From IMG/VR virus record IMGVR_UViG_3300014720_000001, positions 140,622-204,621 of that record: a stretch of 64,000 bases of DNA; one strand, written 5' to 3'. The notes below the pieces were generated by a model, which did not search any database, had not been told where the DNA came from, and was given only the letters and a program-made list of their open reading frames with translations. A program made the translations under genes and the position numbers. Shown here piece by piece: positions 11,392 through 64,000 of this stretch (position 1 is its first letter; each line of letters starts with the position of its first letter).

Positions 11392-11403
11392 AAACGTCCT
11401 TTC

Positions 11404-12887: not shown

Positions 12888-13292
12888 TTAAAGAAGTTTG
12901 ACTGCGAAACCAAACCAATACCGTAAACCACTGTTCAATCCGGTGTCGGGATCATACAGCAGCTCTACGGGATTACCAGTCGCGATATAAAAATGGCGAA
13001 CGGGGCCGGGAAGATAACCCGCGCAGGCTAGACCGACCTGTAGCATAAACGCCATTGCCAAGTCAGCCCGCGGACTCAAATCGTACGAAAAAAGCGGAAT
13101 GCGTAAATACTCGTCGTGCTCGGAAAATGACCACGTGGGCTGCTCGCCGGGGTTGTACGCGGCATCCAAAATATGCCACCGCGAGCCCCCTACCGCCTCG
13201 ACGGGTTTGACTAGTGCCGGCGCGAACGGGACGCCTTCCGGCCAGTTGTCCCGCGTTTTTTTCATATCTAAACGGTCAACAGAAATTTTCAT
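12888..13292 (-). CDS. hypothetical protein
   Basis: 134 aa, ATGA coupling. Confidence 0.7.
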   Translation of the reverse strand: MKISVDRLDMKKTRDNWPEGVPFAPALVKPVEAVGGSRWHILDAAYNPGEQPTWSFSEHDEYLRIPLFSYDLSPRADLAMAFMLQVGLACAGYLPGPVRHFYIATGNPVELLYDPDTGLNSGLRYWFGFAVKLL

Positions 13293-13987
13293 GCTGTCAT
13301 CGTCCTCGGTTCAGCGGCTTCGACACCCGCTGAATTTACATTGATTTTGACGCCTTCCCGAAAATGACAAAACCGAATGTCCTGATGTTTGAAAGCGGCG
13401 CCGAGAATCCGGTCGCCATGTTTTTGCTTAAAGTCGGGCGGTGGAAAATCAAACCGCTGCAGTAATTCGGTTTTAATAGCCCACCAGCCGCCGATGACAT
13501 ACGGCAGGTACGTTTTTTCAAAAGCCGGGTTAAACCACGGCTGCTGCGTTAACCAGTCAAGCTGCTCGTCGGGAAGTTTGGCGCGCTCTACAGACCCCAC
13601 AAGATTGCAACCGTTCACGTTAGTCGTTACGCGGGCAAACCAGTTGTGTACGTCGTCCATCGGCTCTAGGTACGAGTCGTGATCGAACCACATCGTAATC
13701 GGCGCGCGGATAGGAGGCGCGTAAAACATCCGGCGCATCATCGGATATTTCATCAGGTTTTCGGCGCTGTGAAATACTGTTGCCGTATGAAAGTGGTCGG
13801 CAATCTGCTGCACAAGAAACCGGGTCGTGTCTGGCCCGACGGCATTACAGCCAAACCGAAACTCAACGTTTTGTTTGGCTAACTCGCGCATAGGTTCGTT
13901 AAGAACGCGCTGCGCCAGTTGAAAATGCTGGTCCTCTGCGCCGTAAAACAAAACGCAGATACAGACCGGTGCGGCTCCTTCCGCCAT
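13289..13987 (-). CDS. glycosyltransferase-like protein, GT-A fold
   Basis: ICVLFYG...EN..KYP...MWFDHDSYL (DxD)...GGWWAIKT...GDRILG. Confidence 0.6.
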   Translation of the reverse strand: MAEGAAPVCICVLFYGAEDQHFQLAQRVLNEPMRELAKQNVEFRFGCNAVGPDTTRFLVQQIADHFHTATVFHSAENLMKYPMMRRMFYAPPIRAPITMWFDHDSYLEPMDDVHNWFARVTTNVNGCNLVGSVERAKLPDEQLDWLTQQPWFNPAFEKTYLPYVIGGWWAIKTELLQRFDFPPPDFKQKHGDRILGAAFKHQDIRFCHFREGVKINVNSAGVEAAEPRTMTA

Positions 13988-14012
13988 ACACGACTCCGTT
14001 CTATTCCGGTAA

Positions 14013-14561
14013 CTACAGCTTCATCGGCGTCATTGCCGAACGAGCGACGGCTACCGGCATCACTACCGGCGGCACGCGAGAGCGACCAAGAAGCTTCAAC
14101 GCCCGCATTACGTCTTGCGGCGCAGGCGCGACATCCTTCTTGGCGTCTTTGACCATCTTATCGACCAGTTCAAGAAACGTCGTGCGATCTTTCACAGACG
14201 TAAAATTGAACCTGACGGAAAACTGCGTCACGGTTTTGCCGGCGTGTTCATCAGCAACGTCGCACCGCTCCCACGCCGACTTATCATCGCCGCGGGTGTA
14301 GACACAGGCAATCCGACCAAGAAAGTCATAGATAACAATAACCGCCGACTTCTCTACGTCCCCGAGCAACGAGAACACGTGTGGAAACTGGGTCGCCGGG
14401 ATAAACGGCAACTTGGAAACCACCGTCTCGTCGAGCGCAAGGCGCTGGAGCTGAAGCGGAAACGTGCGCTGACCGCGCGTCTCGTCTTTGATGAAGAACT
14501 CAGCCTCCAGCGCGCCTACACCGGGCTCAATCACAATCGGCACATTACGTACAGAAAACAT
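14013..14561 (-). CDS. hypothetical protein
   Basis: 182 aa with GGAGG RBS. Confidence 0.75.
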   Translation of the reverse strand: MFSVRNVPIVIEPGVGALEAEFFIKDETRGQRTFPLQLQRLALDETVVSKLPFIPATQFPHVFSLLGDVEKSAVIVIYDFLGRIACVYTRGDDKSAWERCDVADEHAGKTVTQFSVRFNFTSVKDRTTFLELVDKMVKDAKKDVAPAPQDVMRALKLLGRSRVPPVVMPVAVARSAMTPMKL

Positions 14562-14569
14562 AAAACCTC

Positions 14570-15457
14570 CTATCGCGTCATGTCGGAACGGCGACGCGGC
14601 GAGGCTTCCTGCTCTTCCGTATCGTCATCAATCTCTTCGCGCTTGGTCAGTTCTTCCCGAACCTTAGCACACATTGCACGGTGATCAGCCACGAGATCAG
14701 ACATTTTCTCGAAGTTCTCAAGGATCTCCGAAAAATAGCCCTGTAACGTAGCGTCAATCTTGGACGGCGGCGCATTTACGATATCGTCGTAAATGTTGTC
14801 GCGCTTCTCGTTGAGCCACAGAGACTCAGACCGAGAAATCCACCGCCGCTGATGCTGCAGCAGATCGTGCATCTGCTGCTTGAGGCCCTTGGGCGACTGG
14901 TGCGTCCGCCCGCTGCTCTTCTGCTTCCCGCGCATCTCCTGCAGCTCAGTGGCCAGCGATCGAGCTGTGAACGCCTCTTCGGCGCACTTCTCCTCGATGG
15001 CTGCCCGCTGCTTGTCATCCGGAATCTGCGTGAGCAGCTGAACATGAGACGTCGTGAGCCGCCATCGCGGACGATCCGGGCAGCGCATACTCAGCAGGCG
15101 AATCACCTCCGCCTCGCTGGGATACTTCTCGAAGAAGTTCACAGCGCCGCGCATCTGCTCGACCGTGTAGACAGGCGCAAAAATCGACATGAGCAGTGAC
15201 GCTCCGTCGATGTGCTGCGACTGCTGCTCGGCCGTCAGAAACCGCTCAGGGTCTCCCTTAACTTCACAGATCAACTTGCCGATCCGCCAGTAGGCGCGCA
15301 GACTAGCCTCCTGCGCGTCACTGAACAGCCCGTCGATCTCTGATACGACATCCTGAAGCTCAGGTGTCAGATTTTCTGCCGCTACTAAATACGGCGAATT
15401 GCGAGACTCGACCATATCAGCCTGAATCATCGCCGCCGCTTTAGACTTCCTACCCAT
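14570..15457 (-). CDS. DUF1016 (YhcG) N-terminal-like helical DNA-binding protein
   Basis: AYWRIGKLI and LTTSHVQLL..IPD..QR.....C.EEAFTARSL resemble YWEIG..I and LSWSH...L....R..Y...A....WS.R.L. Confidence 0.55.
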   Translation of the reverse strand: MGRKSKAAAMIQADMVESRNSPYLVAAENLTPELQDVVSEIDGLFSDAQEASLRAYWRIGKLICEVKGDPERFLTAEQQSQHIDGASLLMSIFAPVYTVEQMRGAVNFFEKYPSEAEVIRLLSMRCPDRPRWRLTTSHVQLLTQIPDDKQRAAIEEKCAEEAFTARSLATELQEMRGKQKSSGRTHQSPKGLKQQMHDLLQHQRRWISRSESLWLNEKRDNIYDDIVNAPPSKIDATLQGYFSEILENFEKMSDLVADHRAMCAKVREELTKREEIDDDTEEQEASPRRRSDMTR

Positions 15458-15483
15458 TGAATCTCTCCTTAAAAAGGAATCAA

Positions 15484-16638
15484 CTATTTACGCTTTCTGC
15501 TTTTCGGAGCAGGAAGCAGCAATTCAAGCGCTGTTGTTTGCAGTAAATCGCGAAGGGTATGGTAATGCCCACGCGAGCACCGCAACATAGCACAAAATAA
15601 GTCATAGGCGTTGCGCCGCTTCAATGACTCTTTTGTGTATACGTCCATGGCGTCACGCGGCTCAAGGTCCGCGCCCACCATGACCGTGTTTCGAATAATC
15701 TGTTTGGCGTCTTCCCGCGTAATTTTGAACTTCATCAAATACGCGGTCCACTTGTCAGTCGCGGCGTCCATCGTCGTTTTGTCTGGTGAAAACTCCATCG
15801 ACAGCCGCATGAGTGCCGCCACACGCTCCGCCACGACATTCATATCAATAACGCGTTCCGCTACGGTGCCCGCCAGTATGGCTGTCCGCCCTACTAAATC
15901 TGCGCCGGTGTGGTTTAACCGGCCGCCTTTGCCCGGCGATGACAATGCTGCGCCGAACTTTGTGTACAGGCACGTTGAGGCCCGGATCGCATTACCGGTG
16001 TCCTCGCGGTTCGAGAAATACCAGCCCGCCGCGAAAGTATGCCGCGGATCGGTATAGATATCAGTACGCCGCGATTTCGGGTCAATGAAGTACAGCCGAA
16101 GTTCCCGGCCCAGTAACTCCGCCCGAAAAAACTCGGCCTGCGGCTGCTTGTCGCGCAGCTCGTTGCTGACCGTCTCCAGAAAAACGCTGTTGTCCAGCAT
16201 GCGGTGGTCGAGGCCCAAAAAGCCCTCCACAGACTGCTCGCGGTGATTCACGAGCAACGTCCGCTCCCGCAGGGCGTCAAAGCGGACTCGCAGCGTGGTG
16301 TTGTAAATACTCACCGCTGCGGCGATATCAGTAGCCCGCGTGGTGGTCCGAATCTGCCGGACGTTCTCGCCCGACAGCTCGTTAAACAACTGCGCCAGCC
16401 CGACAGACAGCGCACCAGACAGCGCGCGAAAACCGATAGCATTAAACCGGTAGCCGTTTTCAGCAATCCGCCCGTCGGGTCCCATGATTAACTGGGACTC
16501 CTCGACAAGGGGCACAGATTCAGTGCTGGTCGAGCGGGCTTCCAGAAACGCCCGGCACTCCTCTAACTGGCTGGCCGAAAACGAGAACGCCGGCACGGGC
16601 GCAAAGACACTGCGCACAGTTGTTGTTGCCGACGCCAT
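15484..16638 (-). CDS. DUF932-like protein
   Basis: VEGFLGLDHRMLDN and AGWYFSNREDTG resemble DUF932 motifs. Confidence 0.5.
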   Translation of the reverse strand: MASATTTVRSVFAPVPAFSFSASQLEECRAFLEARSTSTESVPLVEESQLIMGPDGRIAENGYRFNAIGFRALSGALSVGLAQLFNELSGENVRQIRTTTRATDIAAAVSIYNTTLRVRFDALRERTLLVNHREQSVEGFLGLDHRMLDNSVFLETVSNELRDKQPQAEFFRAELLGRELRLYFIDPKSRRTDIYTDPRHTFAAGWYFSNREDTGNAIRASTCLYTKFGAALSSPGKGGRLNHTGADLVGRTAILAGTVAERVIDMNVVAERVAALMRLSMEFSPDKTTMDAATDKWTAYLMKFKITREDAKQIIRNTVMVGADLEPRDAMDVYTKESLKRRNAYDLFCAMLRCSRGHYHTLRDLLQTTALELLLPAPKSRKRK

Positions 16639-17923: not shown

Positions 17924-18275
17924 CGTCTTCCTCGTCGTACTTGTCGGCGTTGTGCTGCTCGTCGTACTCGTCGACGGCTTCCATGAATTCATCAAACGTC
18001 AAATCTGGAGCGTTTTGACACTCCAAAAACTGATAGATGAATTTACTTTCGCCGGTCTCTTTGTCGACGCGTTCCATCAACCGGTAGTGCATCATGTCGC
18101 CGGTTTCGTGGTTGTACCCGCTGATAATCGTGTCAGCTTCGGGCAGCGGGACCGGCAACTTTGAACCGTCTACAGGGCCGCCAAAACATTCGGCGAGCGG
18201 GAACAAGCCTTTTTGCATGCCCATAAATTCATGTTCGATAACCCCGTCGTCTTCGTCTTCTTCTGCCTCGTCCAT
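17907..18275 (-). CDS. acidic hypothetical protein
   Basis: GGPVDG motif, D/E-rich termini. Confidence 0.7.
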   Translation of the reverse strand: MDEAEEDEDDGVIEHEFMGMQKGLFPLAECFGGPVDGSKLPVPLPEADTIISGYNHETGDMMHYRLMERVDKETGESKFIYQFLECQNAPDLTFDEFMEAVDEYDEQHNADKYDEEDDDSES

Positions 18276-19645
18276 TAGTCCACCTGTCCAAGAGGATCGA
18301 AATCCGCTCCAACAACTTCGCCAACTGTGCTAGACGCAGCCATTAGCTCGGGTACGTCGGTCATCTGGTTTTTCTTCAACTCTTCCATCACCTGCTCGCG
18401 GTACTTGCGCGCCGGATCGCAGACGGTGTAGTCGTTAACACCGAGTAAGCCGTGCAGCATGCCGAGGACCTTTGGGTTGTCTTCGAGCATGATGGACGCC
18501 TCGACTTCCGACACGGCTTCCTGCTTGGAAATACCGAGCGCCTTGGAGAAGACGAGCGGTGTTTCGGCGTTCTTGGTGCCGTGCTTGTACTCCAGATCGC
18601 AGACCTGCTTGAGCAAGCCCGGCAGCTTGGGGTCCATGCCCGGAACCGGCTTACCGTCGCCCGCCTGTAGCTCCATAAGGAGCCGGATGGACGCAGTGTG
18701 CCAGTCCCAGAAATGGAACTGCTGGTTCTTGTAGGTCTCGTTGCCGTTCTTATCGACGGCCGGTACGATCTCGTTGTACCAGAGCAGATTAACAACGATC
18801 TTGCGCCCGGGAGCGCCGAGATTGTTCTTAGTCGCTGCTATACGAATCGACGCACCCTCATAACGCGGCGGGATGTTCTTCTGCGACGCCTTCGACATGT
18901 CGAGGATCAACGTCGGATAGTAATCCAGACTGGCGCCGCCGGGAGCGTACTTCTTGGGCGGACCAAATCCCATGGAGTTAATTTCCTCCTTGAGATGGTT
19001 CGTCGCAACAAGCGCAATCGGGTAATGCCGCAGCGTAGGCACCAGCGCCGTCCGCATGAAGTCCGACAGATTGCGGGCGAGATACGGGTGACCGGCCGCG
19101 GCGTGACCCTCGTCGGCTACCTTCTCGACGCGCCTATCAACCTCGACAGCCGAGATAGAGTCGATGCCGATACAGATAGGAATAACCCTGTCCGGGGCGT
19201 TAGCGGCGTCAACTTGCTTGTGAATAGCCTGACAGAATTCCATGTAGTGCTTTTGCCATTCTTCCACGCTCGCTGCCGTCTTGATCCGGGTGCGCGAGAT
19301 GTACTGCTGGTTGTGACTGAACAAGCCCGACATCATCGTCGGCGAGCCCTTGTTTTCCGTGTCGATCATGATGGCGCCGCCGCCATACATGTGAAACCAG
19401 CGCATGATCTCGATGAGCAACGCGGACTTACCGGCGCTGAACTCGCCGCGAAGCTGCGTGAAGCGCGACAGCGGGAAAATGTTAGCCTGCAGCAGATAGC
19501 GGGCTGCAAGCGTGGGAAGCGGCAAGCCGATCAGCGGGTCTTGATCTTCCGCCGTCGCCTTGAGCACTTCCGTGATAACCGGATGCTCGCCGTTGCGGGC
19601 GAACACATCAACTTCGTCGTGATCTTCTTTGCGTTTCCTGCCCAT
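18275..19645 (-). CDS. recA: RecA/UvsX-like recombinase
   Basis: Walker A GEFSAGKS, IDTE, IGIDSI, ATNHLKE, APGGASLDYY, KNNLGAP. Confidence 0.9.
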   Translation of the reverse strand: MGRKRKEDHDEVDVFARNGEHPVITEVLKATAEDQDPLIGLPLPTLAARYLLQANIFPLSRFTQLRGEFSAGKSALLIEIMRWFHMYGGGAIMIDTENKGSPTMMSGLFSHNQQYISRTRIKTAASVEEWQKHYMEFCQAIHKQVDAANAPDRVIPICIGIDSISAVEVDRRVEKVADEGHAAAGHPYLARNLSDFMRTALVPTLRHYPIALVATNHLKEEINSMGFGPPKKYAPGGASLDYYPTLILDMSKASQKNIPPRYEGASIRIAATKNNLGAPGRKIVVNLLWYNEIVPAVDKNGNETYKNQQFHFWDWHTASIRLLMELQAGDGKPVPGMDPKLPGLLKQVCDLEYKHGTKNAETPLVFSKALGISKQEAVSEVEASIMLEDNPKVLGMLHGLLGVNDYTVCDPARKYREQVMEELKKNQMTDVPELMAASSTVGEVVGADFDPLGQVD

Positions 19646-19670
19646 AAATTCCCTTCTGATATGAAAGCCC

Positions 19671-19717
19671 CAGCTCCGGCGCACACGCACCCAGAGAACA
19701 ACGTGGCGCCGGAGCTG
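19671..19717 (-). other. intergenic 12-bp stem hairpin (processing or termination signal)
   Basis: CAGCTCCGGCGC / GCGCCGGAGCTG inverted repeat. Confidence 0.5.
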
Positions 19718-21160: not shown

Positions 21161-21188
21161 ACTATAGCAGACAAAACCAGTCTGTCTA
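21161..21188 (-). promoter_or_regulatory. sigma70-like promoter upstream of the SSB gene
   Basis: TAGACA-16 nt-TATAGT with extended -10 TG. Confidence 0.4.
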
Positions 21189-24100
21189 GCCCTTCTCATC
21201 GCAAAACCAATCGATCCCCAAACCCCTAGATTTCGCGGGTTTTAGGTTCTCTCCCCAGTGGAAAAACACGTCGCGACTCATGCCGAAATGGTATGGCCCG
21301 GCGTTCTCAATCTTGGTGCCGTCCAACCTATGCGGCCAGAACGGTACCCCAGTTACCATGCACTCTGGAATAACTTCTTTGTAAACGCGCTCGGCGTGCT
21401 CTAGCGGCACAATTAACACAATCGCGTCATGGATCTGCAGCGCGATTTTGTAATCAATATCCGAGTGCTCTTCGCGATACTTGTAGAAGTTGTAAAGCGC
21501 AATCGACACGGCGTCAGCTACTCCGCCTTGAATTGGGAAGTTCTGCGCCTGTCGCTCCTGCTCGCCACGTACAGCGCGGTCCTTGGTGGGCATGAACCGG
21601 CGGAAGCGGCCGTACGGACCAACTAACCAGCCCGGGTCTTGAGACCGCATACGGCACTCTGCCAGAAATGACTTCGTGCCGGGATAAGACTGAAAGTAGG
21701 CGTCAATCATCGCTTGGCACTGATCGGCCGTGACGTCGTGACCTTCCTCTTTGCACTGGCGCGCAAGAGCTTCTGAGCCGCGGCCGTACGGAATGCCGAA
21801 GTTCACGTTTTTGGCTGCAACCCGAAGACCCTTTACACCAGCGTCGGCCATACCCTGTTTTGTGGGCGTGACGCCGCTGAGCCGGAAGGTCTTAACCGCC
21901 TGCTGACTGTGGATGTCGTAGTGATCCGGGTGATCCTCTGGCAGAAGATTACGCCGGACGTGCTCGATCATATTTTTATCTTGGCTCAACCACGCGAGGA
22001 CCGCCAGTTCCGCACCAGTGAGGTCGGTTTCGATACCAACGCAGCCCTTGGGTACACGAAGGATCGAGCGCACGGGATGCTGGTATCGGTCCTTTCCGAG
22101 AATGCGCTTGTAGTCGTCTTCTCGGCGGGAACTGAGGTTCTGCAAAGGAGGTCGGCTGCTGCTGGCTCGGCCTGTTTCCTTCGTCTGAAACATGTGAGTA
22201 CGGACCTTACCGTCGGTGTGGACACAGCCGACAAGACCTTTCTCATACGTGTAATTACCGTTCTCATCGAGTTCGTATTCTCCGTCGTCTGTTTCAGAAG
22301 GTTTACGCAACACGGACTGCAGCACCTGACTGATAAATTTGTAGTCACGGATTTTCGCTGCGGTCGAGTTAATGTGGCCAAGGATGCCCAGACTTTCTTT
22401 GTCCGTGCTGGGTGTCACGGTGTCAGCGTTCAGCCCGCGGTACGTCAACTCGTTCCACAGCACGGGGCGCTTGCCGGTTGTTTTAACCGGCCGCAGATCA
22501 AGCGTCTGCGCCGCCTCTGGGATCGTCGGCGAGTTTGTATACCGGTCAGCGAAATCCCGGCCAAACAGCGCAATGGCGAGCTGCGGCTGCGACTTGGGAT
22601 TAAACTCTGGCCACTGCAGTTCTTCGCGAATCTCGGCCAGTAGTTGCTCCTGCGTGTTCATAAACAGCGTGGTCAACTCGTCCGCGCGATTGCGGTCGAT
22701 TTCAAGGCCAGTCATTTCCATCTCTAGAAACGCCAGCGACGCGTTATGGGCGGTCCAGTACGGCAGCCAGCAGTCGTGGCCTGTGCCGGACCGCGCGATA
22801 ATTCCGTCTTTGCCGTTGGTGCCGTAAAAACGCATCATGATGCGGCGCGTAACGTCGACGTCATACGAGGCGTACGGATGGAGCACGTGCGCCGGACACT
22901 CGCCGTACCCGCCGACTTCACTGGCTTTCAATTTGTTATCAGTACGATACTTTTTCTTCCAGTGGTCGAGCGGTTCCCAATAGGTCGGCGCCGCCGTAAA
23001 CCGCATAGAGCATTCGTCGAGCCCGTAGCGCGCGCACTCGTTCACGGCGTGATACATCAGGCTCGTGTCCCAGCCGCCGTGCGTGCGGTCGTCCGGGTCT
23101 TCGGCGGGCGCATACTCCGGCCGAACGTCCACACCGAAATCAACGAGCCACGGCAAGTCAGCGCGGAAGAAGTGCCCGCCAACGCGGACATGACGATCAG
23201 GCGTGCTTTTCAGCAGACGAATCATTTGCTGGCGAGCCGCGTTCAGATTTGGCTGGAACGCTTCCGCGCCGCCTTGGTGCCGCAGAACTATTGTTCGGGC
23301 CCACTTGTCTTTATTTGATATCTGAACCGTCCGCAGATACGCGCCGTCTTCCGTCGGATAGTCGCCGTGCCACTCACAATCGATGGCGATGATATTGGCG
23401 TTCGGGTCCGGGTCGGCGAGCATGGCGTCCACGACTTCCGCTAGCGCCTCTTCGGTATAGATATCAGCGTGGTCAACCGCTTCTTCGTCCAGCAGTTCGT
23501 CGTGAATAAGCGCTTTGAACCGCCGGATCTGCCCGACAAAATCTTCTGTTGCTTCAGGCTTGCGCACGACAAATGCCGGGTGCATCACCGACATGGCTTT
23601 CATAGTGCGAGTGTTGCCGTCCGCGTCGGGCGCTGAGATATCTAAAATCCGCCCGGCTAATCCCGTCACCGCGGCGTTGGTACGCATCACCGCTTTTATG
23701 GCCTCGTTGCCGAGACACAAAATAAACTCGGGCTGGACGATGCGGATTTCCTGCTCCAGCAAAATCGCGCAGTTCTTGATCCACGCGGCCGGTACAGCCG
23801 TGATTTCAAACGGCGCGGCAAACTTACACGCAAACGTGACGTACCAGCTTTCGTACATCTCGGGCGGAATACCGCACTCTTCGAAGATCTCGGCCAGCGC
23901 GGTCATGGCTGGACCGGCCGTGGCGTTCAAGCTTTCCATCTCGTAGTAGCCGGGCAGTTTGCCGACGACCATCACCCGCGCTTTGTGCCACGGGCCGTAT
24001 GTCTCGACGGCGGCTGATTTTTTGCCCCAGATATGGCCGGGCAAAAACGAAACCGGAATCAGCTCTTTTGACGACTTGTGCGAGATTGGCAGGTGAAAGT

Positions 24101-24353
24101 CCGGCCGGTAAAGCGCATTGCGATACAAGTTCGTCAAGTGCGTCCCAACCGGCACGCTCTTCTTTTTCTTCGCGCTCGCTTCATCAATTTCATCGCCCAG
24201 CACCACTGCGTGCGCAATGAAGTCTGGGCCGGCTGGCGGCATACCCGGATCCGTAAGCGGAATGAACGGGTATGCCGCAGCCGTAAAGTCTTCTGTATTC
24301 GGATCGTACAGCGTCTGCGTCAGACGGTGCGTAAGCGAAATACCCTGTGCCAT
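21186..24353 (-). CDS. polA: family A DNA polymerase with N-terminal UDG-like domain and 3'-5' exonuclease (SPO1-like architecture)
   Basis: UDG-like VMVVGKLPG...EIRIVQPEFILCLG...HPA; exo DCE, YASYD; pol motifs DLTGAEL, RVAAKNVNFGIPYG, NFPIQG, QIHD. Confidence 0.95.
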   Translation of the reverse strand: MAQGISLTHRLTQTLYDPNTEDFTAAAYPFIPLTDPGMPPAGPDFIAHAVVLGDEIDEASAKKKKSVPVGTHLTNLYRNALYRPDFHLPISHKSSKELIPVSFLPGHIWGKKSAAVETYGPWHKARVMVVGKLPGYYEMESLNATAGPAMTALAEIFEECGIPPEMYESWYVTFACKFAAPFEITAVPAAWIKNCAILLEQEIRIVQPEFILCLGNEAIKAVMRTNAAVTGLAGRILDISAPDADGNTRTMKAMSVMHPAFVVRKPEATEDFVGQIRRFKALIHDELLDEEAVDHADIYTEEALAEVVDAMLADPDPNANIIAIDCEWHGDYPTEDGAYLRTVQISNKDKWARTIVLRHQGGAEAFQPNLNAARQQMIRLLKSTPDRHVRVGGHFFRADLPWLVDFGVDVRPEYAPAEDPDDRTHGGWDTSLMYHAVNECARYGLDECSMRFTAAPTYWEPLDHWKKKYRTDNKLKASEVGGYGECPAHVLHPYASYDVDVTRRIMMRFYGTNGKDGIIARSGTGHDCWLPYWTAHNASLAFLEMEMTGLEIDRNRADELTTLFMNTQEQLLAEIREELQWPEFNPKSQPQLAIALFGRDFADRYTNSPTIPEAAQTLDLRPVKTTGKRPVLWNELTYRGLNADTVTPSTDKESLGILGHINSTAAKIRDYKFISQVLQSVLRKPSETDDGEYELDENGNYTYEKGLVGCVHTDGKVRTHMFQTKETGRASSSRPPLQNLSSRREDDYKRILGKDRYQHPVRSILRVPKGCVGIETDLTGAELAVLAWLSQDKNMIEHVRRNLLPEDHPDHYDIHSQQAVKTFRLSGVTPTKQGMADAGVKGLRVAAKNVNFGIPYGRGSEALARQCKEEGHDVTADQCQAMIDAYFQSYPGTKSFLAECRMRSQDPGWLVGPYGRFRRFMPTKDRAVRGEQERQAQNFPIQGGVADAVSIALYNFYKYREEHSDIDYKIALQIHDAIVLIVPLEHAERVYKEVIPECMVTGVPFWPHRLDGTKIENAGPYHFGMSRDVFFHWGENLKPAKSRGLGIDWFCDEKG

Positions 24354-27115: not shown

Positions 27116-27875
27116 CGTAATTTCTCCAATACTGCCTTATCTCGACAACGCCGAGTTTAATTTCGTTTTCTATCCACCATGCGTATTCTGGATGCGTCGC
27201 GATTACGGCGTCATATGACCGCTGCTGCGCTTCGTAATCCAGCGCGGCTTTCCATAAATAACGCTCGACGGCTTTTTCGCAGTTACGGCGAGAGGCAAAC
27301 GCGTTTCGAAAAAACGGAGTCGCTGTGACGTAACTTTCGTCGCAGAGTACGTATAGTTCCTGCGTGGCCTCCGGCATTTTGTATATCGCGGTTGTTGACA
27401 TTCGTAACTTCAACGTCTCTGCCGCCACGTGAAAACGATCTTTAAGTATCCGCGGCATATGAGTCATGTAGTCGCGGTAAATCTCGGCTGACTTGGCGCT
27501 GTACAAAATCGCTGGGCGCATTTCCGTCAAACGCTGATTGCCGGTCGCAATGCGTTCGGTCGCAATGGCCGAAAAATGCGCGTATACCCAGCCGCCAAGA
27601 TCCGCGTCGACACGTTCTGCGGCGCGAAGAATTTTGCCCCAGACAGGCGTGTGTTTTACGCCGTAGGAGTCTTTACCGCCGTCCCATGACGGCCTACGCC
27701 GAGTATGCGTATTTGCGTCCCAGTCGTGGACGCGTTCATTTAGATATATGTACTGGTACCGGATGTAAGCAAGTTTTTGCTCCGGCGTCAGAAACCTGTA
27801 CCAGTCAGCTGATAATAGATCTACATCATTCCCCGCTATCTGCTCCGCGGGTTCGCCAAGAGCGCTGCGCGTCAT
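27108..27875 (-). CDS. hypothetical protein in the replication operon
   Basis: Start MTRSAL with GGAG; lies between the SF2 and DnaB helicases. Confidence 0.75.
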   Translation of the reverse strand: MTRSALGEPAEQIAGNDVDLLSADWYRFLTPEQKLAYIRYQYIYLNERVHDWDANTHTRRRPSWDGGKDSYGVKHTPVWGKILRAAERVDADLGGWVYAHFSAIATERIATGNQRLTEMRPAILYSAKSAEIYRDYMTHMPRILKDRFHVAAETLKLRMSTTAIYKMPEATQELYVLCDESYVTATPFFRNAFASRRNCEKAVERYLWKAALDYEAQQRSYDAVIATHPEYAWWIENEIKLGVVEIRQYWRNYDA

Positions 27876-29364
27876 GCCAATTCTGCTCCCATCCGAGGAG
27901 TTTATAGCTGTTTCGTCGCCCCAGACTCTTCCGATAGAAGGTCGGGTCGAACGTGTCCATGCAATCCAATACTTCGCCAAACTCTTTTCGCGTGCCGTCT
28001 GGAGCTGTGTAAATTCGACTTACACGCCCCGGACCCTGCACGTCCACAATATCGCTATCGCGGTCATCGGCGCGGACAAGAACATTTAGTTGTTCAAAGT
28101 CGACACCGGTGGCCCATACGTCCGTGGCGATTACGCGCTTGAGTTGTCCAGCCTCGAACTGAGAACGCATGTCGTACTTTTGAATGTCTGTGAGCGGCTT
28201 GTAGTCGGCGGGCAAAAGGCCCTTTTTCCGATAGCCGGCACAGTCATAAGGCGACATGTTTCCATATACGAGACTGAAATCAGGCAATTGCGCGCCGAGA
28301 TGAACAGCGTGTTCAATCGTCTCTACGAGGATCAGAATTTGGTGAGATTCTGGATATCCCCGCACGGCTTCGGCGATGATACGGTTCCGCTCATGGTTTG
28401 TCCAGATGCCGTATCGCTTTCGCGCCACACGGTTGTTGTAGCGCTCGGCAGGGTTCGCACGCAGCCGCATGGGAAGCCAATTGACTCGCACCGGCACAAC
28501 CAGCCCAAGCTCGACAGCGTTCTGGTAGGTCAACTCGAATACCATCGGGCCGAACATGGGCTCAAGCACCGCATGAGCGTTGTCCATTCGGGCGTATGGC
28601 GTCGCGCTCAAACCAAAGTTGCGGCTTGTGCGATAGCGGGCGGCTAGCGCCGTAGAGAAATTGATCGTAGCGAGCTGGTGAACCTCGTCGGCAAACAGGA
28701 AGTCTGCATCGCCATCCGAGTGCGCCAAGCTGCCAGCCGTGATCACCGTGACGCGCTCCCACTGTTTCCAGCCGTCGCCTACGCGGCCCACTTTCGGCAA
28801 AAGCCGTTTCAGGCTGCGCACGATACGGTCGGCTACGTCCACGGACTTTGTAACGACGTGGATCTTGGCGGTAGGAAACAACAGTGCGGCAGCGCCGATC
28901 AGGGTCGTTTTGCCGAACCCGGTGACCGCCTTGATAATTCCGCACGGCACACGAGAGATCGTGCGTAAACATTCTTCCTGTCGGGCGCGAAACGTAATCC
29001 GACCGTCCAGATTCTCCCACTGCGGCGTAAAGCAGTCTGGCCGCTTTCGCTGGCCGGACCGATCTACAAGCAACGTGGGACAACCAAGCTTTTTCAGGCG
29101 GTTGACCATGCGCGCCAGATATCCGCTCAGCACAACAACATGGCCGTGCTCGACGCGGTATAGCTTGTATTCTTTTGTCTGAAAGAACATGCGCTGTCCA
29201 GTAATCGGATCCCGGCGCGCTTGTCCGTGAACCTGCTCGACGTGAGAGTATCGCAGGTCGTGTGTGAGCCGCTTGATCAGCTCTTCGTTTAATGGCGCAT
29301 TGTCTGCGCCGGTCAGCGTTAAAACGTTGCCAACGCGTGTAATTGTTACCGGTTGTGCAAGCAT
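27826..29364 (-). CDS. superfamily 2 helicase (UvsW/XPB-like)
   Basis: R..Q, TGFGKT, DEVH, GLSATP, ATDVWATGVD, QGPGRVSR. Confidence 0.92.
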   Translation of the reverse strand: MLAQPVTITRVGNVLTLTGADNAPLNEELIKRLTHDLRYSHVEQVHGQARRDPITGQRMFFQTKEYKLYRVEHGHVVVLSGYLARMVNRLKKLGCPTLLVDRSGQRKRPDCFTPQWENLDGRITFRARQEECLRTISRVPCGIIKAVTGFGKTTLIGAAALLFPTAKIHVVTKSVDVADRIVRSLKRLLPKVGRVGDGWKQWERVTVITAGSLAHSDGDADFLFADEVHQLATINFSTALAARYRTSRNFGLSATPYARMDNAHAVLEPMFGPMVFELTYQNAVELGLVVPVRVNWLPMRLRANPAERYNNRVARKRYGIWTNHERNRIIAEAVRGYPESHQILILVETIEHAVHLGAQLPDFSLVYGNMSPYDCAGYRKKGLLPADYKPLTDIQKYDMRSQFEAGQLKRVIATDVWATGVDFEQLNVLVRADDRDSDIVDVQGPGRVSRIYTAPDGTRKEFGEVLDCMDTFDPTFYRKSLGRRNSYKLLGWEQNWHDAQRSWRTRGADSGE

Positions 29365-29365
29365 G

Positions 29366-29863
29366 CTATCCGTCGCTTCCCGGCCCTGAGACGGGTTCGA
29401 CGGAAAGGACTTCAAATGTCCCATATTTTTCCTGTGCGTTGTTGAACGGGGAAAACCCCCGATACTTCCCGACCAAGGTGAGTAAATGCACAAAGTCTCC
29501 CAGTGAAATCTCCTCCGGAAGCACCGCCGACAATATCACAATGTCGCCGGGGCGAAAAGCCTCGTGCAGCGCGTAGTGGCTGCGCATCTGATTATCGGCC
29601 TGTTGCGTCAAAATCGTGCGGCGCCAGTCGTTTCTGGGCTCGCCCATGACGATTGGGCACCAATCAATTTTTTTGACGTCGCTGTGGTGCCGGTTGGCGA
29701 TCTTGGCCGCATACCGCATACACGACAGCCACGCCGACGGCAGAAACATGACACGCTGGCTGGGGTCACGGTCGAAGCAGAAAATAATCTGTCCGTGCCG
29801 CCGCTTTTTGGCGGCTCCGAGGCACACGCGGTTGAACCGGATTTTGATAGTTATTTCCTGCAT
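29366..29863 (-). CDS. stand-alone RAMP (Cas7/Csm3-like) protein
   Basis: ITIKIRF...CLG; FDRD...RVMFLPSAW.S.MR.AA; HEAFRPG; LL..VGKYRGFSPF...YGTFEV (degenerate G-rich loop before the last strand). Confidence 0.6.
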   Translation of the reverse strand: MQEITIKIRFNRVCLGAAKKRRHGQIIFCFDRDPSQRVMFLPSAWLSCMRYAAKIANRHHSDVKKIDWCPIVMGEPRNDWRRTILTQQADNQMRSHYALHEAFRPGDIVILSAVLPEEISLGDFVHLLTLVGKYRGFSPFNNAQEKYGTFEVLSVEPVSGPGSDG

Positions 29864-29864
29864 G

Positions 29865-30800
29865 TTATTTCTTGCTCATATGCTCCGCGTACGCCGCCCG
29901 TTCTGCCGGTGTCTTGAAAAACAAGTTTGGCGCGAACAGCCCGTCTTTTGTGCCGCGTCGATTTTCAATCCCGTCTAGCCAGTTGTAACGCAGATAGCGC
30001 ACAAACGCCTGCGACGCTCGAAGATCGCCCTTCGGGCCGCCCTTGGCCGCTTTGTAAATGCGATACAAAAAGTTAGCGGGATCTTGTAAATCAATTGCGT
30101 CTGGTTCCACGGTCTTCCACGTCCGCAAAACATTTGCGCAACGCAGCTCGCGGCCTTTGTGCAGCAAGCGCTTCGGCGTTGACACGCTTGTTTGTACCTG
30201 CGGAGTCAGACCCAGAAACAGCTCCAGCTTAGCCGCACGATCCGGTGACTTACGGTCCACGTACCAGCGCGGATCTACAATCGTGGCCAGCAGCTGCGCG
30301 GCCACTTCCGCGTCCAACGTCGGAATAAACGTCAGCGCTTTATGTGCCGGGTGCATCCGAAAGTACGCCTGCGCCGCGTCGTCAAACACAAAGTTTGTCC
30401 GCTGCATGCGCCCGAGAATCGCGTACGTCGGGTAATCGTGGACCGAAAGCGCATGCCAGCCGCCCGCAGCCGGCGCTACGTCGACACTGCGCATGCGACG
30501 CAAAACAATCTGCGGGTCGTCAATATCTTCGGCAGTGTGCAAGACGTTCGGTCCGGCGATCTCAACGCGGTTAATCTCGTTTTTATGGCGGCGTAAATAC
30601 AGCGCCGAAATTAACTCGGCGTTTTGCGGCAGCCCAAGTACGCGCACCTGTACGCCAATGCCGTTTAGCACGGGAGACAGCAGAAACGAATCCAGCAGCT
30701 GCTCGGAGTTGGTTGCCGGGCCGATTCCGGTTGAAAACCAAACCCGACCATCCGTATGCGTGTGCAGTTTAATTACTGTTTCATCAGTTACGCTGTACAT
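29865..30800 (-). CDS. IS110/Nop (Tas-like) domain protein with degenerate RuvC-like N-terminus
   Basis: HPAHKALTFIPTLDAEVAAQLLATIVDPRWY...KLELFLGLTP resembles Transposase_20 L.TIPGIG...AA.LLAEIGD..RF...L..Y.GL.P. Confidence 0.65.
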   Translation of the reverse strand: MYSVTDETVIKLHTHTDGRVWFSTGIGPATNSEQLLDSFLLSPVLNGIGVQVRVLGLPQNAELISALYLRRHKNEINRVEIAGPNVLHTAEDIDDPQIVLRRMRSVDVAPAAGGWHALSVHDYPTYAILGRMQRTNFVFDDAAQAYFRMHPAHKALTFIPTLDAEVAAQLLATIVDPRWYVDRKSPDRAAKLELFLGLTPQVQTSVSTPKRLLHKGRELRCANVLRTWKTVEPDAIDLQDPANFLYRIYKAAKGGPKGDLRASQAFVRYLRYNWLDGIENRRGTKDGLFAPNLFFKTPAERAAYAEHMSKK

Positions 30801-32937
30801 GCCGCAGCTCCGGAGCTTCGAGTTCAATAGCCGATTCAAACAAGTGAGACAGATTAACCGCGTGGGTTACCAGTAAGCACTGCAACCCCTTGGCCGTTGA
30901 CAGCTCGCGCAGCTTTTCTAGCACCGGGGCCAGCGCTTGAATACGCGGCTGATCCAGTGACGCAGTCGGCTCGTCCAGCGCAAGCAAGCCGATTTCTTCG
31001 GCAAACATCGCGTTGACGGCGACGCGAAACGCAAGTGCCAAGACCGTTTTCTGCCCGACAGATAGTCGTTGAGCGACTTGTCGTCGTCCGTCAAAGAACT
31101 CGGCGATAAATGTTGGTGTTCCATCCGTGGCCACCTTGATAACAAAGTTTACACGAAACACCTGCAGCAACTCATTAATCGCCGCTTCAAGCCGCTGCAG
31201 GTTACGCTGTGCTACGAGCCGCGGCGCATTCTTCAAAGCCTCTCGCGCTGTTTCTGCCAGTCCAGACCAGCGCCGCAGCTTACCAGCCCGAACTTCCTGC
31301 GCTCGCACTTCTGCGCACTGCTCGTCAAACCGCTTCTTCTCGAACAGGATTTGCGCGCGCTGATCCGCCAGCCCCGTGCGCGTTTTCAGCTGCTCCTGTA
31401 ACTGCTGCAACTGCGTCTGCGCCAGATGCGCGTCAGCATGTGTGACAGATATCTCAGCCAACTCTTCTTCGAGCTGCTTCTTGCGGGCCTTGAGCGCTTC
31501 GATTGCGCCATTGACCTGCGCCCGTTCTTCCCGAGCTTTCTGAGCCAGCGGTTCAATCTCTTTCTTGACGCGCTGAAACTCTTCGTAATCCACGACCGCC
31601 TGCTGCAGCTCATCCTCGCTCGATTCTGGCGGCTTTACAGCGAGTAAGTCTTTTTCAGCTGCGTCAAGCTGCTGTTCTTTCGCTTCGCGCGCTTTCTGTC
31701 GCTTTTCCCAATCCTGCCACACGGCCTCTTTGAGTGTCTGACGACTGGCAGCGTTTTTCCACTCCACTAGGTCTTCTTCCATTTTCACAAGGTCAAGCTT
31801 GTACTGCTCAACCTGCGCCGCCAACTGCGACGACGGTGTGTGGCATGTGGGGCATTCGGCGCAACCGTCAGCCGAAAACATATCAATAAATCGTTTGGCG
31901 TCTTTGATACGCTGCTCACGCGAGTGCTGATCGCGGCGCATTTCTTCAGCAGTCGGCAAACCCGGCTTTTCAGGCTGCTGATCTTTCTCGCATTCGGCGG
32001 CTAGTTGCGCGCGCGTGGCCTGAAAGTTTTCCTTGGCTTTCGCGACGCTCTTGTAGCTCGCCCAATGCCCGAGCGCGACCCGGGCGGCGGCGTGCGCTGA
32101 TTCCTGCCCGTCAGCCGCCTGCGTCAACGCCAGCAGGTCTGCGTCGTACTGCGCAGAGGAGTTTACAAGCGCTTCCAGTGCTTGCTGTTGCTGCTCAAGT
32201 TGCTTTTCCAGCTTGGACAGCTCCGCCGCGCCACGCTCTCTGGCGTCCCACTGCTGAATTGTCGTCTGGTCGGCCCGCATGAGCGCCAGAATGTTATCTG
32301 GGTTCGGCAGTTGCGCGATCTGCTCCGCCAGCGCCTGCGCCCGCTTTGCCGCATCATTTGCCTGCGCCTCCAGCTCGTCAGCGGTATGCACGATCTCTGG
32401 AATGCTCAGCTTAGATAGCGACTTGCCAATTACGTCTTGGCACTTGTCAGCCCGCGACGTGTTAAACAGCCGCTGAAAAAACTTATCAGTGTCAGTTTGG
32501 TTGTCGTCAATGAACGAAAAGATCTCAGTCTGCGAGACAATGATAAACCGACTGATAAACTTGGCGTCGACACCCAACAGCTTCTCGATGCCGGCGGTTA
32601 CGCTCTTGTCGCCGCGGCCTATTTCTTTGCCATCCACGAGTAGGGTGGACTGCTCTTTCTCCGGCAGTAGGTGCCGTGTCACAACAGCGATATGCCCGTT
32701 ATGTTCGAACTCTAGCGTGGCGTACGCAGGTTCACCTTCGCGAGCATATTGCGAAATGTTGTCGGACTTTACGCCAAAATTTGGATTCTCGCCGGTGAGC
32801 AGCCATCGAATCGCGCCAAACAAGCTGCTCTTGCCAGAACCGTTTTCGCCGAGAATCGCGACTAACCCGCGGGTAAACTCACACACTCGATAGCGGTGGT
32901 GTACCCAATTCTTCACTTCCAGTCGCAAGAGCTGCAT
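30784..32937 (-). CDS. sbcC: Rad50/SbcC-like ATPase
   Basis: GENGSGKSS, coiled coil with CPTC hook, LSVGQK signature, LALDEPT, VTH. Confidence 0.93.
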   Translation of the reverse strand: MQLLRLEVKNWVHHRYRVCEFTRGLVAILGENGSGKSSLFGAIRWLLTGENPNFGVKSDNISQYAREGEPAYATLEFEHNGHIAVVTRHLLPEKEQSTLLVDGKEIGRGDKSVTAGIEKLLGVDAKFISRFIIVSQTEIFSFIDDNQTDTDKFFQRLFNTSRADKCQDVIGKSLSKLSIPEIVHTADELEAQANDAAKRAQALAEQIAQLPNPDNILALMRADQTTIQQWDARERGAAELSKLEKQLEQQQQALEALVNSSAQYDADLLALTQAADGQESAHAAARVALGHWASYKSVAKAKENFQATRAQLAAECEKDQQPEKPGLPTAEEMRRDQHSREQRIKDAKRFIDMFSADGCAECPTCHTPSSQLAAQVEQYKLDLVKMEEDLVEWKNAASRQTLKEAVWQDWEKRQKAREAKEQQLDAAEKDLLAVKPPESSEDELQQAVVDYEEFQRVKKEIEPLAQKAREERAQVNGAIEALKARKKQLEEELAEISVTHADAHLAQTQLQQLQEQLKTRTGLADQRAQILFEKKRFDEQCAEVRAQEVRAGKLRRWSGLAETAREALKNAPRLVAQRNLQRLEAAINELLQVFRVNFVIKVATDGTPTFIAEFFDGRRQVAQRLSVGQKTVLALAFRVAVNAMFAEEIGLLALDEPTASLDQPRIQALAPVLEKLRELSTAKGLQCLLVTHAVNLSHLFESAIELEAPELRHVQRN

Positions 32938-34060
32938 CGTTAGGTTCTCCCGTCATGTATTTTGAAAACTGTACATCAAGCTCTTTGGTTGCATCTTCGG
33001 CCGCCAACAGTGACGCCGCTAGTTTGTAAGCATCTGTGCCGTCGCCGAGCAGGTCGGCCAGCGCAGACAATAAATCGTTCTTGGCGCCGTCACGTGTACC
33101 AGCGCGCTTGTCGGCGTCGTACTTGTTCGTCAGCGCCTCGCAGAACACGTGCGCCGAATCACCAACTGCCGTGACCAACCGGATATACGCGTCGGGCAAC
33201 CGCTTGTCGAATTTCATGCGCACAATTGGCTTCATGATTTCCAGCGGATGACCAGCCTGCATAGCCTCCGAACGCGCCGCGCTAATATCTCGAACCAGCC
33301 ACTCAGCGCAGAGATTGTCGAGCAATTCTTGATCCTCGACGCGGTAGTCGAGAAACCGGCGGGTCTTCAGCGGCACAGGGCGGAACTCAAAATTGCCCTG
33401 CCCGTCGTCATAGATAACAAAAAAGAACTTTGACGGATCTTCGCCGCAGTCCTGCATGCAAATCGAACCCGGCGACAGCATCTGAATCGGCTGGCCTTGC
33501 GCGTTTGCGGCGGTCACTATCTTGGTCACATGAAAGTCGCCGGCCAGCACGGTCCGGACATGATGCACGTCAAACAGGTCGCACTCGGTGCGGCCTACGT
33601 TGCCCATGAAATCTTTCCAGACCTGATGCACAATCAAGATATCAGTATCTTCCGGCACTTCTTTGAACGCCGTCTGAATCTCGCCGCGCGGTAACCAGTC
33701 AAGGCCGTACACGCGCACACCGTTGATCGTTACGGTTTGCTTATGGATGTGCCGCGACCACTTATGCACGCTCAACCACGGCGCATTGCGGTCGTACTCG
33801 TGATTACCCTGAATGTAGTTCACGTCGAGGTTCGCGGCCTGCATGCGGCTCAGCCCGTTACACAACTGCGCAATCGGTCGAGCTGCGTTGCTTTTCTTCT
33901 CCAGCACGTCGCCGCCCAGAATTAACTGCAAGCCGTGATTGATGCAGTAGTCGATGATCTGATTAAAACTGTAATACGCGTCGCCGTAGATTCCGGGCCG
34001 CGTTGACCATGCACCATCTTCAAGGTGCAGGTCAGCGGTAAACACAAAAAGAGGTCTCAC
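32879..34060 (-). CDS. sbcD: Mre11/SbcD-like nuclease
   Basis: ADLHL, GGDV, GNHE, VHQ, GDFH, SPGS metallophosphoesterase motifs; next to Rad50. Confidence 0.92.
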   Translation of the reverse strand: MRPLFVFTADLHLEDGAWSTRPGIYGDAYYSFNQIIDYCINHGLQLILGGDVLEKKSNAARPIAQLCNGLSRMQAANLDVNYIQGNHEYDRNAPWLSVHKWSRHIHKQTVTINGVRVYGLDWLPRGEIQTAFKEVPEDTDILIVHQVWKDFMGNVGRTECDLFDVHHVRTVLAGDFHVTKIVTAANAQGQPIQMLSPGSICMQDCGEDPSKFFFVIYDDGQGNFEFRPVPLKTRRFLDYRVEDQELLDNLCAEWLVRDISAARSEAMQAGHPLEIMKPIVRMKFDKRLPDAYIRLVTAVGDSAHVFCEALTNKYDADKRAGTRDGAKNDLLSALADLLGDGTDAYKLAASLLAAEDATKELDVQFSKYMTGEPNDAALATGSEELGTPPLSSV

Positions 34061-35001: not shown

Positions 35002-35077
35002 TAGCCGGGGTGAGATTCGAACTCACGGTCCCTAGCTTATGAGGCTAGTGAGGACGACCAGACTCCTCTACCCGGCG
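35002..35077 (-). tRNA. tRNA with CAT anticodon (Met, initiator-like features)
   Basis: Cloverleaf: anticodon arm CTAGC-CTCATAA-GCTAG, T arm GTGAG-TTCGAAT-CTCAC; no encoded CCA. Confidence 0.88.
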
Positions 35078-36143: not shown

Positions 36144-36214
36144 ATGCCCGACTAGGATTCGAACCTAGACAAAAAGAATCAAAATCTCTTGTGCTACCGT
36201 TACACCATCGGGCA
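36144..36214 (-). tRNA. tRNA-Gln (TTG)
   Basis: Acceptor TGCCCGA/TCGGGCA, anticodon loop TTTTGAT, T arm CTAGG-TTCGAAT-CCTAG. Confidence 0.9.
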
Positions 36215-63626: not shown

Positions 63627-64000
63627 TGGTGTCGTCGGGTACAAGCTTGTCCAGTTCTTCTTTCTGTTGTCTGATTTGTTCTGCCACGTGTGCAGCATAC
63701 TGGTCAAGCATTCGCAACTGGCCGACAAGATCCTTGTGCACGTCGACGCTAAACATCGACAAGCGCCGAAGCAGCATGAGCAGGCTGGCGGTAAACGGCG
63801 GTTCTTTGCTGCGCAGACTAAGTAAACCGGGCGGAGCATTTTCTGGCTGCGACGACCAGAGTGGCACCAGCGCAATGCCGTGCAGCTCCGGTACGGCGGC
63901 GAGCACCGTGTTGCAGAACTCTTCGCCGCGTCGCATGAACTCGACGTCAAATGGTAGGCGGTCAGATTGAATTTCAGTTTGCTGATCAGTTTGCTGCGGC
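63610..64000 (-). CDS. partial hypothetical protein, start probably beyond the window
   Basis: Frame is open to the right edge (..QQTDQQTEIQSDRLPFDVEFMRRGEEF..). Confidence 0.65.
   Translation of the reverse strand, partial: PQQTDQQTEIQSDRLPFDVEFMRRGEEFCNTVLAAVPELHGIALVPLWSSQPENAPPGLLSLRSKEPPFTASLLMLLRRLSMFSVDVHKDLVGQLRMLDQYAAHVAEQIRQQKEELDKLVPDDTNAQQS

Follow-up and report, generated by a model that had tools for sequence, protein, structure and literature searches.

An array-less TasR-like protein of the IS110/Nop5/TIGR-Tas superfamily in the replication and recombination operon of a complete phage genome

TIGR-Tas systems were defined by Faure et al. in 2025 (PMC12045711), who also noted subsets of these systems with a predicted inactive RuvC domain. 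According to Xu et al. (2026, bioRxiv 10.64898/2026.09.09.750476), both TasA and the dead TasR proteins repress under the guidance of RNA, the latter binding to DNA via a guide RNA; the same preprint describes a compact array-less TasR branch without a coiled coil in dense viral genomes and leaves its nature and the source of its guide open. A related precedent is Nop5 of the box C/D ribonucleoproteins (RNPs), whose dead RuvC-like domain recruits fibrillarin (PMC11213020). Here we describe a gene, referred to as X, which encodes a TasR-like, array-less protein of 311 amino acids (aa) from the superfamily that includes these proteins and the IS110 transposases. It lies at positions 29865..30800 (minus strand, stop codon included) of a 64,000-nucleotide stretch, “the window” below, which is the final 64 kb of the viral record IMGVR_UViG_3300014720_000001; the record is 204,621 bp long, has direct terminal repeats and is rated complete. 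Coordinates are those of the window unless the genome or a locus is named, and all protein-coding genes discussed in the window are on the minus strand.

Compared with the TIGR-Tas TasR proteins, X has the same order of domains (RuvC-like, then Nop), shares with them the Nop-domain motifs HPxW...L..I and GL and is likewise of viral origin; its best solved match is a TasR structure, 9MTY. As in CsTasR (R8, V126), which like PateTasR is a dead stem-loop TasR, the RuvC site of X is inactivated at the first two positions. X differs from TasR in that it has no TIGR array or tigRNA unit and most of the coiled-coil dimerisation module is missing; it also scores far under the TIGR_Tas_endo cut-off, and it is a fixed core gene of a replication operon with a RAMP protein encoded next to it, not part of an accessory locus. 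X agrees with the compact array-less TasR branch in its small size, in the truncation of its coiled coil, in the density of the genome and in lacking an array, a comparison made by description only. The Nop-domain structural alignment of Faure et al. (PMC12045711) includes the protein AF-A0A3M1VGY1, in which we find the signature motifs of the X family together with a gapped coiled-coil region.

The IS110 bridge-RNA recombinases (IS621, ISCro4, IS4321) resemble X in domain order and fold, in the motifs IP..(I/L)....A..LL..I and (F/Y)xGLxP, and in the profile of the C-terminal domain. Unlike them, X has neither the DEDD tetrad nor a conserved serine, shows no beta strand in the modelled C-terminal domain, carries a linker shorter by about 30-40 residues, lacks non-coding ends and a bridge RNA, and is single-copy and syntenic. 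Nop5 and Nop56/58, in which a dead RuvC-like docking domain is combined with an RNA-binding Nop domain, can serve as a functional model for X; however, Nop5 dimerises by a long coiled coil and recruits L7Ae in addition to fibrillarin.

Fold, remote homology and catalytic residues

The frame of X extends over 29865-30839 in the list of open reading frames. Its start was set at the ATG at 30800 (MYSVTDE...) by aligning 35 close and 103 distant homologues, so that the interval and strand coincide exactly with those of an initial annotation made from the letters of this DNA. X is a functional protein-coding gene under strong purifying selection, as follows from the size of the family, the low dN/dS and the occurrence of nucleotide differences at multiples of three bases. 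The 90% collection yields 328 matches, the longest of their contigs reaching about 205 kb; when clustered at 50% identity, the family has no fewer than 773 clusters (E<=1e-3), nearly all of 300-350 aa. Against close relatives dN/dS, a check proposed in the initial annotation, is about 0.03-0.05 with saturated dS; taken together, these values place the gene far beyond chance. Searches with tblastn for X and for the product of the adjacent gene g165 gave no match among 50,697 phage isolates; hence the lineage has no cultured representative in that collection. The DNA polymerase (PolA) of this phage is only 25% identical to that of SPO1-like phages. A single mis-binned contig of a metagenome-assembled genome was found in the bacterial genomes searched, which gives no clue to the host.

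X is a member of the IS110/Nop5/TIGR-Tas superfamily, in which TasR is nearest to it by fold and IS110 nearest by profile. The AlphaFold2 (AF2) model (pLDDT 83.5, pTM 0.82) consists of an N-terminal beta-beta-beta-alpha-beta-alpha-beta unit and an all-helical domain. VIA-align was used twice, once for re-scoring and once in an independent scan that covered 48,161 chains. It placed TIGR-TasR 9MTY first (Z 10.4 over 229 residues and Z 10.5 over 222 residues; residues 8-293 of X), TasH second (9W03, Z 9.0; 21KL, Z 8.7; residues 120-294) and IS621/ISCro4 third (Z 7.8 and 6.8; residues 4-294). In the Foldseek comparison with the PDB the seven best matches are all IS621/ISCro4 bridge recombinases, full length and with E of about 0.02, and the matches to Nop5/Prp31 are weak. 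The best structural match in the ESM Atlas is an IS110 transposase cluster (TM 0.51, 247 residues); a fragment of the IS110 DEDD domain matches residues 7-122 with TM 0.62, and the feature search in the same resource points to PF02371.

At the profile level, hhalign aligned residues 116-274 of the X family with residues 168-322 of IS4321 (probability 87.8%, E 3.3e-6); the IS110 profile was built from 18 transposases extracted from loci found with PF01548. Just two of the 18,950 NCBIfam models match X, both at residues 139-218 and both far under their cut-offs: NF033542 (IS110) with 15.7 bits against 140 (E 0.006) and NF052498 (TIGR_Tas_endo) with 14.4 bits against 100 (E 0.027). Thus, X does not reach the curated cut-off for membership in either the IS110 or the TIGR-Tas model. 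Its family profile matches a profile of 32 TasH sequences weakly (E 0.0055 over 65 columns), as it does a single TasH sequence, and when the N-terminal domain is compared on its own with the IS110 DEDD domain, hhalign gives no significant similarity (E 0.61). Pfam returned no match to X at E<=10, the IS110 models PF01548 and PF02371 being silent, and PF02371 is matched by one of the 103 family members (E 0.028). Searches of X against PHROGs, PADLOC and the PDB sequences found nothing.

These results bear on two statements of the initial annotation. The match of the C-terminal half to the Transposase_20/Nop motif holds at the remote level, in hhalign and in the two NCBIfam models, but is undetectable with Pfam. 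The threading of the N-terminal half on the IS110 DEDD domain is supported by the RNase H-like fold and the IS110 DEDD cluster but not by the profile of this domain alone. The annotation had also proposed a Foldseek comparison, with the absence of IS110 or Nop similarity as the outcome that would contradict it; as the seven best matches show, the similarity is there.

The N-terminal domain (residues 1-112, 30465..30800) is RuvC/RNase H-like in the AF2 model and the structure matches, without a conserved DEDD site. Its strands are at residues 9-14, 19-24, 30-35, 51-55 and 78-82, and its helices at 36-39 and 58-72. Matches confined to this domain (Z 5-7) include the YqgF domain of Spt6/Tex, RuvX, the poxvirus resolvase, phage RuvC and the RuvC domains of Cas12 and TnpB. 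The DEDD register was predicted from the IS621/ISCro4 sequences, the TaTasR sequence (Table S1 of Faure et al.) and the strand positions of the AF2 model. In this register, which agrees with the threading of the initial annotation, VIKLH13TH corresponds to IGID and LAVD, RVL55GLPQ to CMEATS and VAENIPQ, VEIAGP84 to SVINP, and ED92IDD95P to KTDAVDA and NDENDS. The first catalytic aspartate, which is D11 in both IS621 and TaTasR, would therefore be replaced by H13 (codon 30762..30764), judging from its position in strand 1 and from motif threading against ISCro4 and TaTasR; D11A of TaTasR is the dead mutant of Faure et al. 2025 (PMC12045711). The site of the catalytic glutamate, at the end of strand 4, appears to be L55 (30636..30638), and D92-I-D-D95 (30516..30527) may be a remnant of the last two acidic residues of the tetrad (KTDxxDA in IS110).

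Column counts were taken from the alignment of the 103 distant homologues, the base of all residue counts given here. Column 13 is mostly histidine (H in 72, T in 8, Q in 8 and Y in 4) and is never acidic. Column 55 is aliphatic (L in 64, I in 16, V in 11), no member has an acidic residue in columns 53-56, and the adjacent R53 and G56 are kept in 93 and 97 members, respectively. Acidic residues occupy column 92 in 56 members and column 95 in 54, D95 being replaced by Asn, Thr or Ser in 34; E80 is Gln in 26. An acidic column 13 together with an acidic column 55-57 occurs in none of the members. No position within residues 1-110 is acidic in 90% or more of the family, and no carboxylate within residues 8-110 is kept in more than 70%. 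Given these counts, the conclusion that the DEDD site is lost is largely independent of the exact register, and the replacement of the first Asp and of the Glu, noticed in the initial annotation by eye, extends to the whole family.

The two domains are joined by a GGWH loop and two short helices (residues 113-149, 30354..30464), where IS110 and Tas proteins carry a long coiled coil. The only inter-domain helices in the AF2 model are residues 123-134 and 141-149; in TaTasR the helices of the coiled coil, K109-D138 and A142-H168, comprise about 60 residues (bioRxiv 10.64898/2026.09.09.750476). The coiled coil is thus shortened, as had been stated in the initial annotation. The rest of the protein (residues 150-311, 29865..30353) is a Nop/Transposase_20-like all-helical domain, assigned by hhalign and the TasH matches, with the motifs HPxxxxLxFIP, DPRW, LGLxP and LRASQ. 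Invariant polar residues are numerous in the C-terminal part (H116, D122, H150, D176, R178, R247, E300).

The serine site of IS110 (S241 in IS621) is described as a small beta-sheet which is absent from Nop5 and Prp31 (PMC11213020), and the model of X has no beta strand after residue 82. Like the catalytic serine of IS110, which stands five residues past the Pro of GLxP (by comparison with ...GLTPRRYES... of IS621), a serine of X itself, S205 (30186..30188), has this offset. The family column is occupied by A in 23 members, R in 16 and S in just 8, so that this position, which the initial annotation had not taken into account, is unconserved as well. Both catalytic centres known in the superfamily, the DEDD site and the IS110 serine, are therefore lost family-wide in X: the positions of H13 and L55 are never acidic, the serine column is unconserved and the C-terminal domain of the model lacks a strand. 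The combination that the annotation had named as contrary to its view, an intact DEDD site with the catalytic serine, was not observed. Since the RuvC-like domain is retained, X resembles a catalytically dead TasR and not the nuclease-less TasA to which it had been likened; the broader proposal of an exapted, immobile IS110/Nop derivative with a degenerate RuvC domain agrees with our data, the nearest solved structures being those of TIGR-Tas proteins.

Genomic position, the neighbour g165 and the search for an array

X is vertically inherited and immobile, a core gene that keeps strict synteny within a replication/recombination operon, an observation that is new here. It occurs once in the 204,621-bp genome. 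It overlaps the upstream SbcC gene by 17 nucleotides (nt) and is separated by 1 nt from the next ATG downstream; hence there are no non-coding ends of an insertion sequence (IS). The operon is ordered as follows: g207; an SbcD/Mre11-like phosphoesterase (32879..34060; Metallophos, phrog_100); an SbcC/Rad50-like ATPase (30784..32937; SMC_N at 1.3e-18, SbcC_Walker_B, phrog_77), the 3' end of which overlaps the start of X; X; g165; an XPB-like helicase of superfamily 2 (SF2; 27826..29364; ResIII, Helicase_C, XPBII at 1.6e-7, NF045503), which begins 1 nt past the g165 stop; g290; and a DnaB-like helicase. It continues with a DnaG-like primase, a family-A polymerase fused to a uracil-DNA glycosylase (UDG) domain, a 459-aa protein and a RecA-like protein. 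The same gene order is found in 41 of 41 related viral loci, where X is from 89% to 49% identical, and in two further members from other samples that are about 30% identical to the X of the window, which gives 43 of 43 loci in total. X diverges at roughly the pace of SbcC and SbcD. The view that X is not a mobile IS, held in the initial annotation, is thus confirmed by its single copy, overlapping neighbours and fixed position in 43 loci; what that annotation missed is the decisive context, i.e., the place in the operon core beside a Cas7-like RAMP.

This RAMP is the 165-aa product of g165 (29366..29863), which starts 1 nt downstream of X and is predicted to be a minimal Cas7/Csm3/Cmr4-like protein from its AF2 model (pLDDT 78) and PDB fold matches. 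In the wide PDB scan the best 50 rows are all CRISPR RAMPs, led by a chain of a Csm complex at Z 11.5; also among the best are a Cmr-beta chain at Z 10.7, Csm3 at Z 9.6 and one chain of a type VII complex at Z 9.5. Foldseek gave 41 matches at E<=1e-3 with probability 1.00; those listed are all chains of CRISPR effector complexes, nearly all of type III, type VII or Cas7-11. A PF03787 cluster matches at TM 0.71, and Pfam, NCBIfam and PADLOC gave no match to g165. Its alignment contains a Csm3-like N-terminal strand and Gly loop, the segment FDRDPxxRVMFLPSAW, an invariant HEAF and the G-rich loop GKYRGFSPF; identity across the 41 viral loci is 62-98%. With the type III and VII Cas7 RAMPs (Csm3, Cmr4), g165 shares the fold, the N-terminal strand and Gly loop, the segment D-x-P...R..(F/I)(L)P(S/G) and the G-rich loop; unlike them, it is only 165 aa long, belongs to a replisome operon and is accompanied by neither a crRNA array nor other Cas proteins. 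The modelled Cas7/Csm3-like RAMP fold with a G-rich loop in this operon is new here. Both proteins are basic, with an isoelectric point (pI) of 9.4 for X, which has 40 Lys and Arg residues, and of 9.2 for g165. The two genes are not obligatorily adjacent, since small genes stand between them in two of the 41 loci: two (147 and 119 aa) in L021 at 10926-12031, and three (189, 270 and 120 aa) in L025 at 10914-12651.

Array types known so far are absent from the complete genome, which is also reported here for the first time. Coding sequence takes up at least 93.6% of the genome, whose largest gap is below 450 nt. Tandem Repeats Finder and lag autocorrelation over all 204.6 kb revealed no TIGR-like array, just collagen-like and protein-domain repeats. 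A scan for stem-loop tigRNA-like units found 0, compared with about 0.5 in shuffled sequence; its pattern was a box (CUU, CCA, CCU or CUA), 8-12 nt, UG and a loop, repeated, with a closing stem of at least 6 bp, and it misses other box motifs. Rfam recognised two tRNAs only in the window, and tRNAs and a tmRNA in the tRNA region. None of the RNA runs contains this phage. Freshwater metatranscriptomes contain short contigs of its relatives, 80-96% identical to parts of the operon (27783-32962), among them one of 192 nt within X (30178-30369) at a depth of 19; their listed differences in X fall at multiples of three bases. These contigs do not prove transcription, as a carry-over of DNA is possible.

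Concerning the other replication genes, the family-A polymerase (21186-24353) has an N-terminal domain of the UDG superfamily and a 3'-5' exonuclease domain, and a 5'-3' exonuclease domain was not matched. Six-frame Pfam searches of the complete genome found no flap endonuclease (FEN, PF02739), no RNase H (PF00075) and no canonical single-stranded DNA-binding protein (SSB, PF00436). In this connection g165 was considered as an SSB analogue, and the idea was dropped.

Proposed role and alternative explanations

We presume, with somewhat better than even confidence, that X is an immobile superfamily member which acts in phage DNA replication or recombination as a non-catalytic scaffold for nucleic acid, probably RNA. 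Like Nop5 and the dead TasR proteins, X would be a basic scaffold without catalysis. Its Nop-like domain would hold RNA or a structured nucleic acid; RNA binding we infer from the fold. Its dead RuvC-like domain could offer a docking surface for partners, of which g165, the SbcCD nuclease and the XPB-like helicase are the prime candidates. The resulting assembly would serve replication or recombination of the phage DNA, as opposed to transposition or array-based defence. It is tempting to go further and propose, quite tentatively and as a guess more likely wrong than right, that X and g165, perhaps with the XPB-like helicase and SbcCD, make up an unrecognised array-less machine that binds RNA or is guided by it and is obligatory in the replisome/recombination module. 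Such a machine could take transcripts or primer RNAs as guides and mark origins, R-loops or DNA ends.

Several observations weigh against the proposed scaffold. No conserved non-coding segment was found near the operon, and nucleotide conservation over distant loci tracks coding genes only. No island of constraint shows in the synonymous-site entropy, which stays level over X, g165, SbcC, DnaB and PolA; it dips only once, where the 3' end of the SbcD frame and the start of SbcC overlap. The array search being negative too, no RNA partner of X was found; a guide may have other motifs or be drawn from ordinary transcripts. X and g165 are paired by adjacency alone, and the complex prediction gave no answer (score 0.00), which is evidence for neither side. 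The mapping of the DEDD positions is predicted from strand positions and motif threading. Finally, the invariant polar residues of the C-terminal domain could form an unrecognised active site.

An alternative that we regard as unlikely, although it deserves attention, is that X is a true TIGR-Tas effector, i.e., a dead TasR that binds DNA via a guide RNA and represses or marks its targets. Its guides would then escape detection as single units, owing to other box motifs, or as cuts from phage or host transcripts. TasR is indeed the best structural match, dead TasR proteins do act as RNA-guided repressors, compact array-less TasR proteins are described from dense viral genomes in the preprint, and the Cas7-like neighbour is of an RNA-binding kind. 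Nevertheless, the complete genome has no dual-repeat or stem-loop unit and no conserved non-coding or synonymously constrained segment; two-spacer targeting requires the Tas dimer, and the coiled coil that forms this dimer is truncated; the TasH profile and NF052498 respond weakly; and a fixed core place in a replisome operon is unlike that of accessory Tas loci. Rather doubtful in our opinion is the suggestion that X is still an enzyme with a non-canonical site, built either from H13, E80, D92 and D95 of the RuvC-like pocket or from the invariant C-terminal residues. Such an enzyme would be a structure-specific nuclease, involved for example in junction or flap resolution, removal of primers or R-loops, or RNA processing. 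The RNase H-like fold with its resolvase-like matches (RuvX, poxvirus resolvase, phage RuvC) speaks for it, as do the lack of a detectable FEN or RNase H family and of a 5'-3' exonuclease domain in the PolA match, the place of X between the SbcCD and helicase genes and the many invariant polar residues. It is at odds with the variability of the carboxylates, E80 and D95 included, with the His and Leu at two positions essential in all RuvC-type enzymes, and with the full-length matches, the best of which are to RNA-guided proteins and not to resolvases.

We consider it improbable that X has lost nucleic-acid binding and is a protein adaptor only, attached to the SbcCD or helicase machinery. The high pI and the 40 Lys and Arg residues disagree with this, as does the conservation pattern, the most conserved part being the helical domain, which binds RNA in all characterised relatives; the 17-nt overlap, which amounts to translational coupling with SbcC, the strict synteny and the docking role of the dead RuvC domain in Nop5 (PMC11213020) are what it can draw upon. 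There is next to no chance that X is an insertion sequence of the IS110 type, whether active or recently decayed. This reading can appeal to the overall IS110-like architecture and to S205 at the serine offset in this protein, but it is refuted by synteny and residue counts: X is a single copy without non-coding ends at the same position in every related phage examined, the DEDD site is absent and the serine rare throughout the family, and the IS110 models of Pfam are silent.

Should X and g165 bind RNA, the IS110/Nop chassis would have been exapted independently for a third time, after the box C/D RNPs and TIGR-Tas, and for the first time in connection with DNA replication. If they do not, an RNA-guided scaffold would have been reused as nothing but a protein or DNA adaptor. 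The array-less machine, if real, would mean that a chassis similar to TIGR-Tas or CRISPR was exapted for genome replication instead of defence. In any case, the locus makes the question about array-less TasR raised by the 2026 TIGR-Tas survey concrete, as it offers a complete genome, the exclusion of known array types, a core gene and a RAMP neighbour.

Minor observations on the operon and the genome

In L025 the frame of the XPB-like helicase (12943-15702) encodes 919 aa, compared with about 512 aa in the window, owing to a large in-frame, intein-like insertion; in L016, L020, L039 and L040 the helicase match is broken by a gap of similar size (about 1.4 kb). The RecA-like recombinase is located downstream in the same minus-strand block (18275-19690), with the 459-aa protein between it and the PolA gene; the block also contains a protein with a match to the DUF1016 N-terminal domain under the Pfam cut-off (14570-15457). 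The ESM Atlas search with g290 found nothing. A NurA-like role in an operon of the Mre11-Rad50 type was considered and rejected, there being no NurA match in the best 50 rows of either PDB search. A protein in Table S1 of Faure et al. that comes from the same metagenome as L003 turned out to be an ordinary TasA outside the X family.

The genome has ten tRNAs, two of them in the window (35002-35077 and 36144-36214), and a full-length tmRNA (RF00023, 144.8 bits; L079 7985-8339, minus strand; genome 113484-113838), which has six clustered tRNAs next to it. Strong periodicity in the genome is confined to long repeats of period 9/18/27 that resemble the collagen type (Gly-X-Y), presumably in structural genes (genome 17.1-19.4 kb and 125.7-127.2 kb), and to a domain repeat of 180-189 nt (genome 20984-21861). 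The largest non-coding gap, of 443 nt (L079 2913-3262; genome 108412-108761), is bracketed by 25-nt inverted repeats that are 96% complementary and 300 nt apart, and a hairpin with 29-nt arms is located at 1910-1990 of L079. The 12-nt tandem unit TCAGTTTGCTGA is present at both ends of the record (window 63974-63996; genome 97-119), in agreement with its direct terminal repeats.

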